DNA of 64,000 nucleotides from Octopus sinensis (Eukaryota). Numbering within the stretch: the stretch's first letter is position 1; each line of letters begins with the position of its first letter. The position numbers were made by a program, and so were the translations under genes. Below, piece by piece: positions 1,210 through 60,598 of the stretch. The stretch lies in the NCBI RefSeq assembly GCF_006345805.1, contig NC_042998.1, positions 104,718,001 to 104,782,000 of the forward strand. Reading direction: 5' to 3'. A model generated the notes under the pieces. It searched no databases and was not told the DNA's origin. It worked only from the letters and a program-made list of their open reading frames with translations.

Positions 1210-1239
1210 CTTTGAAGAACCCTAGCGATAGGTGAAAAT
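1210..1239 (-). CDS. Candidate 30-nt phase 1-1 exon of gene A, (D)FHLSLGFFK(G)
   Basis: Strong acceptor tgtttctatttcacag|, donor aag|gtaaca, open symmetric phase-1 frame, lying downstream of the gene A signal exon. No homology support. Confidence 0.3.
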
Positions 1240-1469
1240 CTGTGAAATAGAAACAGTATTGTAGTGTATAATTTTTTATTATTTTTATAATTTGTATATA
1301 TATATATTATTATAAATGCAAAACAAACCGCAGAGGAATCGATGTAAACTTAAATAAGAAACTGCATGCTTAAATAATGAACGGCGATATGGCGAGAGAT
1401 TACTGTAATATATATATATATATATATATATATATATATATATATATATAATATATATATATATATATA

Positions 1470-1930
1470 TGCATAAATGCATATATTGTCGTTCAGTGCT
1501 CGAAATGAGTAGATAGACATCCAACAAATGATGAAGGGTCGTTTTTTTTTTATATTACTTGTCCTGTTTTCCAATTGTCTCTCTCGTTGTTTGCGTATTG
1601 AACTCATTTGTTTTCTTATTTAATGTTGTTTACTGTTGTTGATGTCCTGTAGCCATAAATGTACACACACACACACACACATATATATTATATATATATG
1701 CATAAATGCATATATTGTCGTTCAGTGCTCGAAATGAGTAGATAGACATCCAACAAATGATGAAGGGTCGTTTTTTTTTTATATTACTTGTCCTGTTTTC
1801 CAATTGTCTCTCTCGTTGTTTGCGTATTGAACTCATTTGTTTTCTTATTTAATGTTGTTTACTGTTGTTGATGTCCTGTAGCCATAAATGTACACACACA
1901 CACACACACACATATATATTTATATATATA
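1470..1930. repeat. Tandem duplication of a ~230 bp unit bounded by TA/CA microsatellites
   Basis: About 1470-1690 is near-identical to about 1700-1930. Confidence 0.85.
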
Positions 1931-2021
1931 TGCATATATATGCATATATTTCATTAAATCGTTATATGTAATTTTTCTGCCCATTTCAACAGAAGTTGTC
2001 AAATACGGATATTGGATTCTT

Positions 2022-2460
2022 GTAGGAGTGGCTGTGTGGAAAGTAGCTTGCTTACCAACCACATGGTTTGGGGTTCAGTCCCACTGCGTGGCGCCTTGGC
2101 CTACTATAGCCTCGGGCCGACCGAAGCCTTGTGAGTGGATTTGGTAGACGGAAACTGAAAGAAGCCCGTAATATATATGTATATATATATATGTGTGTGT
2201 GTGTGTGTGTGTGTGTGTGTGTGTGTGTACGTGTGTGTATATGTTTGTGTGTCCGTGTTTATCCACCCACATCGCTTGACAACCGATGCTGGTGTGTTTA
2301 CGTCCCGTAACTTATTGGTTCGGCAAAACTGACAGATAAAATAATTACTAGGCTTACAAAGAATAAGTCCTGGGGTCAATTTGCTCGACTAAAAGCGGTG
2401 CTCCAGCTTGGCTACAGTCAAATGATTGAAGCAAGTAAAAGAGTAAAAGAGTAAAAGAGT
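2022..2460 (+). mobile_element. tRNA-derived SINE family 1 with internal (GT)n and (AAAAGAGT)n tail
   Basis: Pol III-like head and repeat tail; near-identical copies at 3643-4058 and 41986-42383. Confidence 0.9.
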
Positions 2461-3080
2461 GTATTTCGTGATTGCATTTGATTTGTAATGTGTTTTATAG
2501 GAGACTGTATTGTAAGTGCCGATTTTGTTGGAATTAGTTTGTCTAATAAATTAAAATACACGCACTGGATGTAATTCACTTTTTACAGCTTTTTACGAAT
2601 TTGTGAGAAAATTTTCGTTACAAGACTTTGGTCTTAGTAATAGCATATTAACCCACCAATATTTTACTTTTCTGGTGTTTGTTATGTTATGTAGCTTGTG
2701 TTTGTGTTTCTTGGTGTAATATCGCGTTCCTCTTATGTGTTTTTAATTTTCTATGTCTGTATACATATGTTTTTTCGTTTGCTTTTATTTTTCCTAGTGC
2801 AGAAATAAGTAAGCAAATGAAATATGTGAAATATTTATGGGCACAATGTAAACAAAAGAGTAACAAGACAGTATATAACACGCACATAGTAATGACAACT
2901 TGTGAATAAGTGAAACTTGTTTATAAACGGATGACAGATATACAATTGGACATTGAGGAGATATAGGTATGACGACATATATGTATGAAGTTTCTACGCT
3001 AAATAGCAACTTGACTTTATACTCTGTACATAAATTAATGCTTGTATGGGGGAATACATAGGAGCATAAAATTTACTTAC

Positions 3081-56687: not shown

Positions 56688-57000
56688 TATATATATATAT
56701 ATATATATATATATATATATATATATATATACATATATATATATATATAATATATATATATATATATATATATATATATATATATATATATATATATATA
56801 TATATCATATATATATAATATATATATATTATATATATATATATATTATATATATATATATATATATATATATATATATATATATATATAATATATATAT
56901 ATATATATATATATATATATATATATATATTATATATAATAATATATATATATATATATATATATATATATATAGATATATATATATATATATATATATA
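56688..57000. repeat. Long (TA)n microsatellite
   Basis: Direct inspection. Confidence 0.98.
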
Positions 57001-57385
57001 GTGGAGGCGCAATGCCCCAGTGGTTAGGACAGCGGACTCGCGGTCGTAGGATCGCGGTTTCGATTCCTAGATCGGGCGTTGTGAGTGTTTATTGAGCGAA
57101 AACACCTAAAGCTCCACGAGGCTCTGGCAGGGATGGTGGTGATCCCTGCTGTACTCTTTCACCACAACTTTCTCTCGATCTTACTTCCTGTTTCTGTTGT
57201 ACCTGTATTTCAAAGGGCCGGCCTTGTCACTCTCTGTGTCACGCTGAATATCCCCGAGAACTACGTTAAGGGTACACGTGTCTGTGGAGTGCTCAGCCAC
57301 TTACACGTTAATTTCACGAGCAGGCTGTTCCGTTGATCGGATCAACCGGAACCCTCGTCGTCGTAACCGACGGAGTGCTTCCACG
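57001..57385 (+). mobile_element. SINE family 3 copy inside (TA)n
   Basis: tRNA-like head; its 3' domain also appears as a minus-strand fragment at ~7080-7260. Confidence 0.85.
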
Positions 57386-57904
57386 TATATATATATATAT
57401 ATATATATATATATATATATATATACAAACATACATACATGTGTGTGTGTGTGTGTGTGACCCTTTTTATTCCTCTTTTGCTATTTTACCGTTCCTTATA
57501 TAGCTAAATTTAGATTTAATTAATGAAATTAAATGTCTTCGTCCTGCATTTCCTAATTGTTTGCCTTTCCTCACTTTTGATGCACAATTGATGCTGTGCG
57601 TGATTGTAGCTTTAAGCTGGTTGATTATCTTCCCTGTTCTTCTTACTTGTATTGTAGTGATGAAGACGTCATGCTGCTAATGACTTTTATCTGTCAAGCG
57701 TGGTAGGAGCTCACAAGATTAGCCTTGGAAATTTTTTGTAGGTTTATCCCGCTACATCCGTGCGTTAATATCACGTGACTATTTTTTGCACCAAAATTGA
57801 GGCTGAAACGATTGAGTCAGCATGACTCGTGAGAGTCTGAAACAAGGCTCTCTAAATTTAATTTGTCAGGTGTAAGAGTGGACAGGAATTGTTTCTATAT
57901 AGCG

Positions 57905-59032
57905 CAGTGGTTGAATAGTTTGTATTCTTGTCAAGCTTCAGGCATATAGTTTCCATCCGGATATTGTACGATGGGTTGGTGCCTTCCTCTCAGATCGCTC
58001 CTTCCAAGTCCAAGTTAATGGTTCGTGGTCCGACGTCTCCAGTGCGAGCAGTGGCGTGCCTCAAGGTTCAGTGCTTGGGCCCTTGTTGTTCTTAGTCTTC
58101 ATAAATGACTTGCCCGATGACCTCACGCAACACACCCTTCTATTTGCCGACGATATCAAACTGGTCGCTCCTCGCGGTAATATAGAGGATCTTCGTCGAT
58201 GCCTCCACCAAATTTGGAAGTGGTCTAACGATTGGGACCTGTGTCTGAACGTGTCAAAGTGCTGTCATCTGCCTGTCGGCTCTACTCCTGCAACTCAACT
58301 TGATTTCGAGCCGGGTCGTCTGCTGCTGGAGAGGACCGATCAAGTAAAGGACCTAGGTATCTTGGTGGATTCCTCCTTTTCGCCTTCGGCCCAGTGCGTC
58401 CATGCTGCCAACAAAGCACGCGGAATTCTGTTCTTGATTCGACGGTCATTCGGAATGCTCACAGCAGCCATATTCCTACCACTCTATGTCACGCTGGTGA
58501 GACCCATATTGGAGTATGGGATTCAAGCCTCTTCTCCTTATCTCCTCAAAGACATACAGCATCTCGAAAGAGTCCAGAAGCTGGCTACCCGCATGGTTCA
58601 TGGTCTCAAAAATTTGTCCTACGAAGAAAGGCTGAGGACGCTCGACCTTTATTATCTTGAAAAACGCCGCCGCCGTAGTGATCTCATTCTCGCCCACAAC
58701 ATCATAAGCGGAAAGTGTAACCTCTCGAAAGAGCTGTTCTTCACTCCTGCTCCAGAGCGTCGGCTGCGGGTCATTCCGAAAAGCTCTACCTGCGACGATT
58801 TCATCTCAATCGAAGGAGAGGAGCTTTCTCCGTCTGGGTTGCGGATCCGTGGAACAAGCTGCCAGACGAGATGGTAAAGATGCCGACGACCGCTTTGTTC
58901 AAAGCCTCCCTGGACCTCAAGTGGCCTAAACTCTTTACATGAACACCACCCTGTACTTAACTCCATGTCCCCCTACATGGCCTTGCTATTTGCTTTTGAG
59001 CCAAATTAACTAACTAACTATCTAACTATCTA
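57905..59032 (+). mobile_element. 5'-truncated CR1/L2-type LINE: RT domain, one frameshift near 58769, (TAAC)n tail
   Basis: PQGSVLGPLLFLVFINDLP...LFADDIKL in ORF 58056-58877. Restoring one G gives GHSEKL...RRGAFSVWVADPWNKLP ending at TGA 58940-58942. Confidence 0.9.
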
Positions 59033-60478
59033 TGTATGCAGGCATCAAATTTTTTTCTCCACTAAATTCGTGTGTTAGACTCATACAAGGAAAAGTAAAG
59101 AATGTGTTCAAAGTTTAGATTGTTAGCTGTGTAAATTCAACACATCAATGAGTTTAGGAGTCAATGTACTTTGTTAAAGTTTGATCAGTCTTCGTATTTT
59201 TATTAATATATTTGCTTTGTTTATCTTTGGTCTTTGGTATTGACTAAACAAAAGTAAAGTGGAAAAACTTAGAACTTGAGACATTTATCTTTTGTGCATA
59301 TGTTTATGTGTCCACCCAGCCTTGATTATCTGAGATTATCACTAGACGTTCACTCAACTGTGACAGCTTTAACATACGGCGCCAAACATATTGTAACATG
59401 GCATTAAAGAACGGACGTAGCAGGGAACTTACAAAACTTTCTAAACCTTATCACGTGATCATCCTCGATCAATCAAATCGCATGCAAGACAAGTTTTGAG
59501 TTGCAATCCAAGACAGTTGCGGCATAAGCTTATGTCTTTCTATCTAAAACTTTTGAAAATCAAATCTGTGAAACCAGTTGTCTTTAAAAATGTTTAAATC
59601 TAAATCAATCCAAAGAGAATTTTCAACTTTTATGTGTGTGTGTGTGTGTGTGTGTGTGCGTGCGAGTGCATGTATACAAGAGGGAGAGAGAGAGAGAGAG
59701 AGAGAGAATCCAATTACATATATAATTCATGCCAGGCACCTGTCAGAAGAAATTTAGAATTTTACTCTAATTCATAATCAGGAAATTTTATTCTTGATAT
59801 TGGTATTAAATATCTATTAATATATGGTTCAACTAAGGCAGAGACCTTGCAGAATCGCTAGCATGTCCTGCGTTTAAATACCACGAGGCCGACTATTACT
59901 TTTATCATTCGGGTTCGATAAGATAAATACCAGTTGAGTACTGGAGTCTGTGTAATCGACTTACCCCTCCTCCGAAATTGCTACAAAATTTGAAACCATT
60001 ACTTGGATCGTCGATTTTATCTATTATCTAAATGTCATCTGTTTTATTTATTGGGTTGCAGTCTGCCCAAGACTGATAGAGCAATCATACACTAAATTTT
60101 TATTTCGGAGTCTGTCATACATTAACATGACAAAGGTTGGTATGAAGAAAAAAGTGAATTCAAAAACAGTGTTTTTGGAGTGAATATTGCATTAAGTAGT
60201 AGTTATTTTAGCAATTGTCAAAGATGAAATCAAATCCAAGTAAATCTGAACTCAGGAACTAAAAAATGGCGAGCATTTTAAATTCAGCAAAATATTTTAC
60301 TTTCTGTTCTTATAGATTCTGAAATACATTGTTTTCCTCATGTTCCACTACTATATTTAAATTATAGATACTACATTCTAGATTTATTTTATCGAAAGGC
60401 ATGGCACGTATTATATGATTCTGGCACGTATTATACGATATGAATTTGGAGGAATAAAAAAAGAACCTACAAGCCTAC

Positions 60479-60598
60479 CAGTTATGTCTTCCAGTACATA
60501 AAATAGATGTCCTACTCGCTTACAAGTATAAACCAGGCAAGAATATGGCTGTCGTATTTTTTTCCCATGTGGATGACAAACTCCATTTATCCTACAAC
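60479..60598 (-). CDS. Gene C most 5' module exon found, (G)CRINGVCHPHGKKIRQPYSCLVYTCKRVGHLFYVLEDIT
   Basis: ctttttaattcatag|gt acceptor, g|gtaggc donor, 120 nt. Splice flanks resemble gene B module 1. Confidence 0.88.

Follow-up and report, generated by a model that had tools for sequence, protein, structure and literature searches.

Fibronectin carries FN1 modules head to tail, one module per symmetric exon, whereas factor XII and tPA carry them singly; the classical FN1 domain belongs to chordates and is described by the PROSITE pattern C-x(6,8)-[LFY]-x5-[FYW]-x-[RK]-x(8,10)-C-x-C-x(6,9)-C. Other systems to which a small tandem cysteine module can be compared are the VWC (chordin-like) and arthropod SVWC modules, with 8-10 cysteines (Cys) per unit, the small secreted beta-microseminoprotein (MSMB/PSP94), and the Fn1_2 (MIG-18-like) domain of secreted invertebrate proteins. 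The founder of the last, C. elegans MIG-18, is described in PMC4856095 as a secreted cofactor of MIG-17/ADAMTS in the basement membrane. Here we analyse a stretch of 64,000 nucleotides (nt) from Octopus sinensis (NC_042998.1, positions 104,718,001 to 104,782,000), called the window below. It lies across three same-strand tandem genes, A, B and C, that encode secreted cysteine-rich repeat proteins, one module per phase-1 exon. We consider it probable that these paralogues encode FN1-like poly-module proteins which serve as scaffolds or adaptors in extracellular matrix or mucus.

The window is AT-rich eukaryotic DNA in which microsatellites and repeats resembling short interspersed nuclear elements (SINEs) are abundant. 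A six-frame regular-expression scan over its whole length found ten matches to GC-x5-C-x3-G-x6-8-C-x4-C, every one of them on the minus strand; the plus strand had none, and the full motif had no match in 200 Markov-1 random windows. When the ten modules were made into a hidden Markov model (HMM), each scored 52-66 bits against it; since the next best open-frame piece of the window reaches only 9 bits, the module count is exactly ten. Each module occupies an exon of 114-123 nt, preceded by a polypyrimidine tract and an AG acceptor and followed by a GT donor. The exon opens with two bases of a Gly codon and closes with one extra base, and is therefore symmetric (phase 1-1), so that isoforms are expected to differ, as they do, by whole modules. 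These ten GT-AG exons had been reported in a first-pass annotation of the window made from the sequence alone, and all of them stand. Nine are already present in RefSeq transcript models, the exception being M27 of gene B. A pseudo-exon or transposon origin of the modules was rejected because of the conservation of splice sites, conservation between species and the transcript models. For comparison between species we used two O. vulgaris loci (OX597815.1; L001 and L002), which extend the region on both sides.

The cluster proteins are of about 25-30 kDa, with an isoelectric point (pI) of 8.9-9.5 and a cysteine content of about 10%. They consist of a signal peptide, a short N-terminal exon, five to seven modules of about 40 residues each, and a terminal exon that adds little beyond one Cys. 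Gene B, complete in the window, is LOC115232515 ("uncharacterized protein"), and our splicing of it matches isoform X3 in all shared exons. Gene A, only partly within the window, is LOC115222431 ("uncharacterized"); its spliced model including module M60 is an exact match to isoform X1 (XP_029648493.1), and a search with a fragment of it also found isoforms X2 and X4, which skip one or two modules. The first-pass annotation had called the cluster hidden, which does not hold for genes A and B but does for gene C, for which there is no protein model.

Self-BLAST of the window bears out the paralogy of two promoter/exon 1/signal-exon blocks, first placed at 3081-5610 and 32178-34085, and shows that it reaches further upstream (3021-3630 against 32117-32869 and 5316-6547 against 33772-35146; 70-76% identity). 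The signal exons, 32178-32245 and 3081-3148, lie exactly at the lower ends of the blocks as first drawn. Two terminal exon/3' untranslated region (UTR) blocks proposed at 17595-18303 and 45633-46092 proved likewise paralogous, with 75% identity between 18158-18325 and 45943-46114; the exons start at 18303 and 46092, and polyadenylation signals are found near the lower bounds. No third signal exon and no small-exon paralogue was found in the window.

What fold these modules adopt was approached by modelling. An AlphaFold2 model of one module, M50 of gene A, made from a 12-row alignment, has a predicted local distance difference test score (pLDDT) of 83; a two-module model reaches pLDDT 87, and in it a five-strand pattern (hairpin A-B, sheet C-D-E) repeats. 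With the two-module model, the top Foldseek match in the PDB was fibronectin FNI2-3 (probability 1.00, template modelling score (TM) 0.53/0.53, 90/90 columns, E=0.057), followed by NEL, MSMB3, factor XII FnI-EGF and VWC domains. The single module matched the collagen IIA VWC domain (probability 0.92), MSMB3, MUC2 C-terminal domains, the CCN3 VWC domain (root-mean-square deviation 2.0 A over 41 columns) and VWF C4. The matches are coherent in that an FN1-like fold is common to all, and weak E-values are expected because the queries are so small. The models are thus supportive, at E-values that are not conclusive, of an FN1-like fold in which a hairpin of two strands precedes a sheet of three. 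The likeness to the first sub-domain of VWC, noticed earlier from Cys spacing, is borne out at the level of the fold, although FN1 is the better overall description.

Domain databases agree with the first-pass view that the module fits no curated family. No Pfam family reached its gathering score on the octopus proteins. The best sequence-profile match to the gene A protein is Fn1_2 (PF23003), with 18.6 bits over four stretches (E=0.002, cut-off 27); the scallop and mussel relatives introduced below score 18.7 and 20.9 bits (E down to 0.0004), all sub-threshold. At 18-21 bits, under the 27-bit gathering cut-off, the Fn1_2 match covers about one and a half octopus modules, and UniProt assigns this domain to some of the Mytilus relatives. 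SVWC (PF15430) gave 11.1 bits (E=0.5, cut-off 27) over profile positions 1-28 of 66, and VWC (PF00093) gave 8.2 bits (E=4.2, cut-off 27.6). Classical Pfam FN1 had no match at E<=10, and neither the gene B protein nor the module profile had a meaningful match among PDB sequences.

Set beside these systems, the octopus module shares with FN1 its length of about 40-45 residues, four Cys per unit, the 2+3-stranded antiparallel beta fold, the head-to-tail tandem layout and the arrangement of one module per symmetric exon. It differs in sequence: its spacing is C-x12-C-x4-C-x15-GC against C-x~22-C-x-C-x8-C in FN1, no module contains the C-x-C pair of the FN1 signature, and no sequence-level match is found. 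The octopus proteins are also small and made of modules only. With VWC/chordin-like and SVWC modules the octopus module shares the N-terminal sub-domain fold and the C-x3-G...C-x4-C...GC spacing, but sub-domain 2 is lacking, the CxxCxC and CCxxC motifs occur in none of 12 octopus modules, which have 4 Cys each (spacing 5/12/4/15), and the octopus proteins are tandem arrays, whereas an SVWC protein has a single eight-Cys domain. MSMB (recurrent fold matches 6rwc and 2iz3) resembles the octopus proteins in its small size, its secretion, its richness in Cys and its FN1-like beta domain, but it is a fixed two-domain, 10-Cys protein with no tandem array and no sequence similarity to them. The module is best filed as an undescribed variant of FN1/VWC-sub-domain-1-like repeats.

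The number of cysteines suggests how the modules might be joined. There are 26 Cys in mature isoform X1 of gene A, and as many in the O. bimaculoides protein: one from the small exon, four per module and one from the terminal exon. In the Patella, Mytilus and Lymnaea proteins the opening unit has three Cys, the first Cys of the module being absent, and the Lymnaea protein ends on a C-terminal Cys. On the simplest reading of these counts, the structural four-Cys unit would be C8..C21..C26..C2', beginning at an exon's second Cys and closing at the "GC" Cys of the next exon. The Cys regarded as extra in the first-pass annotation would then probably be the fourth Cys of an FN1-like unit offset from the exon boundary. 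The exon boundary would fall inside the disulfide unit, in contrast to FN1, in which it falls between units and the four Cys form 1-3 and 2-4 disulfides. By bonding to the module of the preceding exon, each exon-start "GC" Cys would turn the array into a continuous stapled rod, with the Cys of the terminal exon and that of the small exon capping its two ends.

The same Cys period, C-x5/6-C-x10-13-C-x4-C-x15/16, is common to the octopus, limpet (Patella), pond snail (Lymnaea) and mussel (Mytilus) proteins. Among 1.84 billion representatives, 37 proteins matched the module profile at E<0.001 (range 1e-74 to 1e-4), with 2-23 matching stretches per protein and many with 5-23. All named matches are molluscs: Octopus (three species), Patella, Lottia, Lymnaea, Physella, Babylonia, Plakobranchus, Mytilus, Pinctada, Pecten, Argopecten and Ylistrum. 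The octopus proteins share with them the repeated four-Cys period, the G after C-x3, the signal peptide and the tandem array. Because uncharacterised proteins of limpets, snails, mussels and scallops repeat this spacing 4-23 times, the module is one of molluscs at large, not of octopuses alone, and the earlier proposal of a lineage-specific family was too narrow for it. With lengths of up to 1495 residues, the distant relatives are very long proteins of matrix-like character. In one scallop member, 23 repeats follow a VWA domain at the N-terminus; this VWA domain and the sub-threshold Fn1_2 were all that Pfam returned on ten family members. Annotations of the family are either uncharacterised or carry the misleading automatic names "prestalk protein", "G surface protein-like" and "Notch-like". 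Literature searches on the locus names, the accessions and the Lottia and Patella relatives found nothing published on any member, and papers on the Lottia shell proteome and the Patella adhesive mucus do not mention the relatives.

Gene B, like all exons of the cluster, reads on the minus strand. In its promoter/exon 1 block (33772..35146, 70-72% identical to 5316-6547), the non-coding exon 1 ends at 33983 (ACATCT/GTGAGT), a donor conserved with that of gene C at 5520. The signal-peptide exon (MRYFLLLISFCITYKQATSQ; 32178..32245) has an upstream acceptor and a phase-1 donor and is identical in isoform X3. A small exon of 63 nt (IRKPCQQKIPLGPKCYIVEE; 30164..30226, phase 1-1), overlooked in the first-pass exon list, was found via isoform X3 and is flanked by AG/GT sites. 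The module exons M29 (the first; 29206..29325), M24 (24886..25008), M23 (23168..23287), M21b (21620..21739) and M21a (the last; 21071..21184, donor ATAC/GTACGT) were identified by the motif scan, HMM, splice sites and phase, and all are in isoform X3. Module M29 has its closest counterparts in the first module of gene A, that of gene C and that of the O. bimaculoides protein. Module exon M27 (27241..27363), found by the scan and the HMM, is intact with consensus splice sites and is absent from isoform X3; four candidate gene B isoforms containing it had no exact match in the protein collection. In O. vulgaris M27 is intact with one L to P change. Of the terminal exon (17595..18303) only C/GT TGC TGA (R-C-stop) is coding, in agreement with the C-terminus ...EKIIRC of isoform X3; the 3'UTR follows, with AATAAA at 17600 and 17584. 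The N-terminus of isoform X3, MCVCVCVRAYLRLKLHL, maps to 33976-34032 on the minus strand and starts from an ATG inside a (TG)n microsatellite of exon 1, which places MCVCVCVRAYLRLKLHLKN ahead of the signal peptide; the downstream MRYFLLL is more likely to be the true start. The O. vulgaris gene models over L001 10001-68551 and L002 10001-79730 are faulty; of these, P0002 is a 58.5-kb chimera with a misframed small exon, two gene B modules only and a poly-E/K tail.

Four modules of gene A lie in the window, each identified by the motif scan, HMM, splice sites and phase. M60 (GCRINGVCHPHGKKIRQPYSCLVYTCKRVGHLFYVLEDIT; 60479..60598) is a cassette, included in isoform X1 and skipped in X2/X4. It is followed by M54 (54588..54704), which is present in protein models P0003, P0004 and P0046, by M50 (50494..50610), and by the last module M47 (47476..47589), which has a shorter loop and the donor AAGA/GTGAGC. 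The terminal exon (45633..46092) codes only for A/GC TGC TCT TAA (S-C-S-stop) before the 3'UTR, with AATAAA at 45638, and the resulting C-terminus ...TTYKSCS agrees with the RefSeq isoforms. The O. vulgaris orthologue differs by two residues, and the window carries the O. sinensis residue at both. Extending the region in O. vulgaris, a step proposed in the first-pass annotation, showed the start of gene A on the right, with a signal exon, a small exon (LSKPCVKKENTNGIYSTRYK) and two more modules upstream of M60; in the 42 kb upstream of the gene there was no further module. The corresponding O. sinensis exons fall beyond the right edge of the window, because 61240-64000 has no counterpart in O. 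vulgaris: collinearity stops at 61239, and the rest is an O. sinensis-specific insertion with several short open reading frames (ORFs) and no Pfam match. Three other observations concern this gene. Its M60-M54 intron contains, on the opposite strand (58056-58877, plus), a 273-residue ORF with a reverse-transcriptase domain (Pfam RVT_1, E=3.5e-12), a fragment of a retroelement of the type without long terminal repeats (LTRs). Its M54-M50 intron is about 9-10 kb longer in O. vulgaris than in O. sinensis (L002 59800-71268 against window 53737-51809). The O. vulgaris model P0048 is faulty and puts a 63-residue N-terminal extension on gene A.

Gene C is represented in the window by its promoter and signal exon only, and its modules lie beyond position 1. 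The promoter/exon 1 block (5316..6547) has the exon 1 donor ACATCT/GTAAGT, and the signal-peptide exon (MWYLLLLSSLCIANAQLKPE; 3081..3148) has an upstream acceptor and a phase-1 donor. Extension to the left in O. vulgaris (L001) found seven more modules 10.8-32 kb past the window edge, with strand, phase and splice pattern unchanged. No further signal, promoter or terminal block was found among them, and the best reading is that all seven belong to a single gene C, which continues past the point where L001 ends. One of them (L001 76612-76720; FYGVGSTISKKCFDGTCIRTQYGRYIWKKKYTG) is truncated, without the GC-x5-C start, and may be a decaying exon. The spliced gene C query had no matching protein in a collection of 5.8 billion proteins, and the gene may be either unannotated or decaying. 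A candidate mini-exon of 30 nt (1210..1239, minus strand, phase 1-1, DFHLSLGFFK) in AG/GT context is identical in O. vulgaris; it is unverified: it encodes no Cys, does not resemble the small exons of A and B and is in no transcript model. A weak match, LRKPVSGKIPL, in an intron of gene C has no splice sites and was rejected as chance. The first intron also contains a tandem duplication of a 229-nt unit (1460-1917, 100% identical).

The history of the cluster can be read from its modules. Each first module, whether of gene A, B or C or of the O. bimaculoides protein, has its nearest matches among the other first modules (45-57%), which suggests that the gene that was duplicated already had several modules. 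Within gene A the pair W1-R2 was duplicated into M60-M54, with DNA identities of 79% and 70% that include the intron flanks; M60 DNA is 79% identical to the first-module exon region of O. vulgaris gene A. Modules C2-C5 of gene C are 53-85% identical, again with conserved intron flanks. The family thus grew by both whole-gene duplication and internal exon duplication. Comparison of O. sinensis with O. vulgaris showed 5 differences in 1370 nt of coding exon (four non-synonymous changes and one synonymous), against 0.9-1.29% in the surrounding non-coding DNA, so that divergence is lower in the exons (p = 0.017 to 0.0004).

A scaffold or adaptor role is put forward because of the fold class, the tandem rod layout, the VWA-bearing relative and the nearest named domain, that of MIG-18; our best guess is a matrix- or mucus-binding rod. 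The proteins would act extracellularly and could bind partners via exposed beta-sheet edges, as FN1 modules do, and via positive charge, the high pI suggesting affinity for polyanions; exon skipping would tune the number of modules. Several points weigh against this view. The disulfide connectivity comes from cysteine counts only, and in gene B isoform X3 the Cys count is odd (23), because its small exon carries two. The best Foldseek E-value, 0.057, is not significant and the models come from shallow alignments of 4-12 rows, and gathering scores in Pfam are not attained. Gene C has no protein model and includes a truncated module, and the literature on all accessions gives no expression, localisation or binding data for any family member. 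Finally, four of the five coding changes are non-synonymous and paralogous modules are only 16-41% identical, a pattern that a rapidly evolving family of recognition or effector proteins explains no less well than a structural family does. Such a family of immune, antimicrobial or salivary-venom effectors, whose basic disulfide-stabilised modules would bind microbial surfaces or prey targets and be diversified by gene duplication, exon duplication and cassette splicing, seems to us rather unlikely. Beyond those two figures, of which the identity is that outside the Cys/Gly scaffold, the basic pI, the Cys content, an O. bimaculoides relative about 35% identical beyond module 1, and the tandem cluster with its recent exon duplications speak for it; so does the fact that secreted cysteine-rich repeat proteins with several domains are an established architecture in venoms (PMC6262176). 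Against it, the five substitutions are far too few for an estimate of the ratio of non-synonymous to synonymous rates (dN/dS), and both the long matrix-like relatives, one with VWA, and the FN1/VWC fold class are typical of matrix and adaptor proteins or resemble them.

It is improbable that the proteins are soluble growth-factor traps of the chordin/CCN/crossveinless type, with VWC-like modules that bind ligands of the BMP/TGF-beta family and modulate signalling. VWC domains (collagen IIA, CCN3, NEL, VWF C4 and MUC2) are among the top fold matches, VWC and SVWC match weakly in Pfam, and the tandem layout is like that of chordin-like repeats; yet CxxCxC, CCxxC and the entire second sub-domain are absent, the VWC score of 8.2 bits compares with a cut-off of 27.6, and the best full-length alignment of the two-module model is to an FN1 pair and not to VWC. 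That the exons are non-functional relics, decaying duplicates or annotation artefacts that yield no stable protein, is very improbable for the cluster and would be likeliest for gene C and M27, given the lack of a gene C protein model in the databases searched, its one truncated O. vulgaris module, and the absence of M27, which bears one of the few non-synonymous changes, from the isoforms tested. All ten modules of the window and six of the seven of gene C nevertheless keep their frames, scaffold Cys and Gly and consensus splice sites in two species, exons are better conserved than introns, and nine of the ten exons are in RefSeq isoforms. Besides the matrix or mucus scaffold that we prefer, we entertain tentatively an extended version in which the modules, stapled across exon boundaries into a rigid rod, define an undescribed mollusc-wide "interlocked poly-FN1-like" family, and the basic, fast-diverging, cassette-spliced three-gene cluster of octopus has a lineage-specific role in recognition or adhesion; that role may be, for example, in immune recognition, an egg or sucker adhesive, or mucus cross-linking.

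The remainder of the window contains repeats. Members of the SINE-like family, of about 400 nt and 77-88% identical, are scattered in introns and intergenic DNA (4115-4516, 18945-19357 (inverted), 31252-31676, 40323-40767 and 55253-55417); the family has no Rfam match at the gathering score, and an Rfam search of the whole window detected no RNA family. Between genes C and B there are direct copies about 850 nt apart (10646-11126 and 11495-11974; 96% over about 480 nt). An inverted 520-nt element rich in AT microsatellites occurs at 9138-9657 and 56679-57192, 90% identical and 47 kb apart. A plus-strand ORF of 138 residues (14829-15245; ..CFEWHGCFKSRTSLESDERSGRAGTS..) has no Pfam match at E<=0.01; we take it to resemble the N-terminus of mariner-type transposases.

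The cluster solves no long-standing question. It does bear on annotation: both octopus species lack a protein model for gene C, and two O. vulgaris gene models are faulty. Within 170 kb it brings together the duplication of whole genes, the duplication of exons inside a gene and the cassette splicing of symmetric exons, which makes it a compact and tractable example. Disulfide units that would straddle exon boundaries are a further oddity, and one that can be tested. If the fold assignment holds, tandem FN1-like arrays are widespread in molluscs and yet covered by no domain database, and dozens of proteins now annotated as "uncharacterized", "prestalk protein" or "G surface protein-like" could be unified in one family. 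Should the interlocked architecture prove true, tandem FN1-type arrays would not be a chordate invention.

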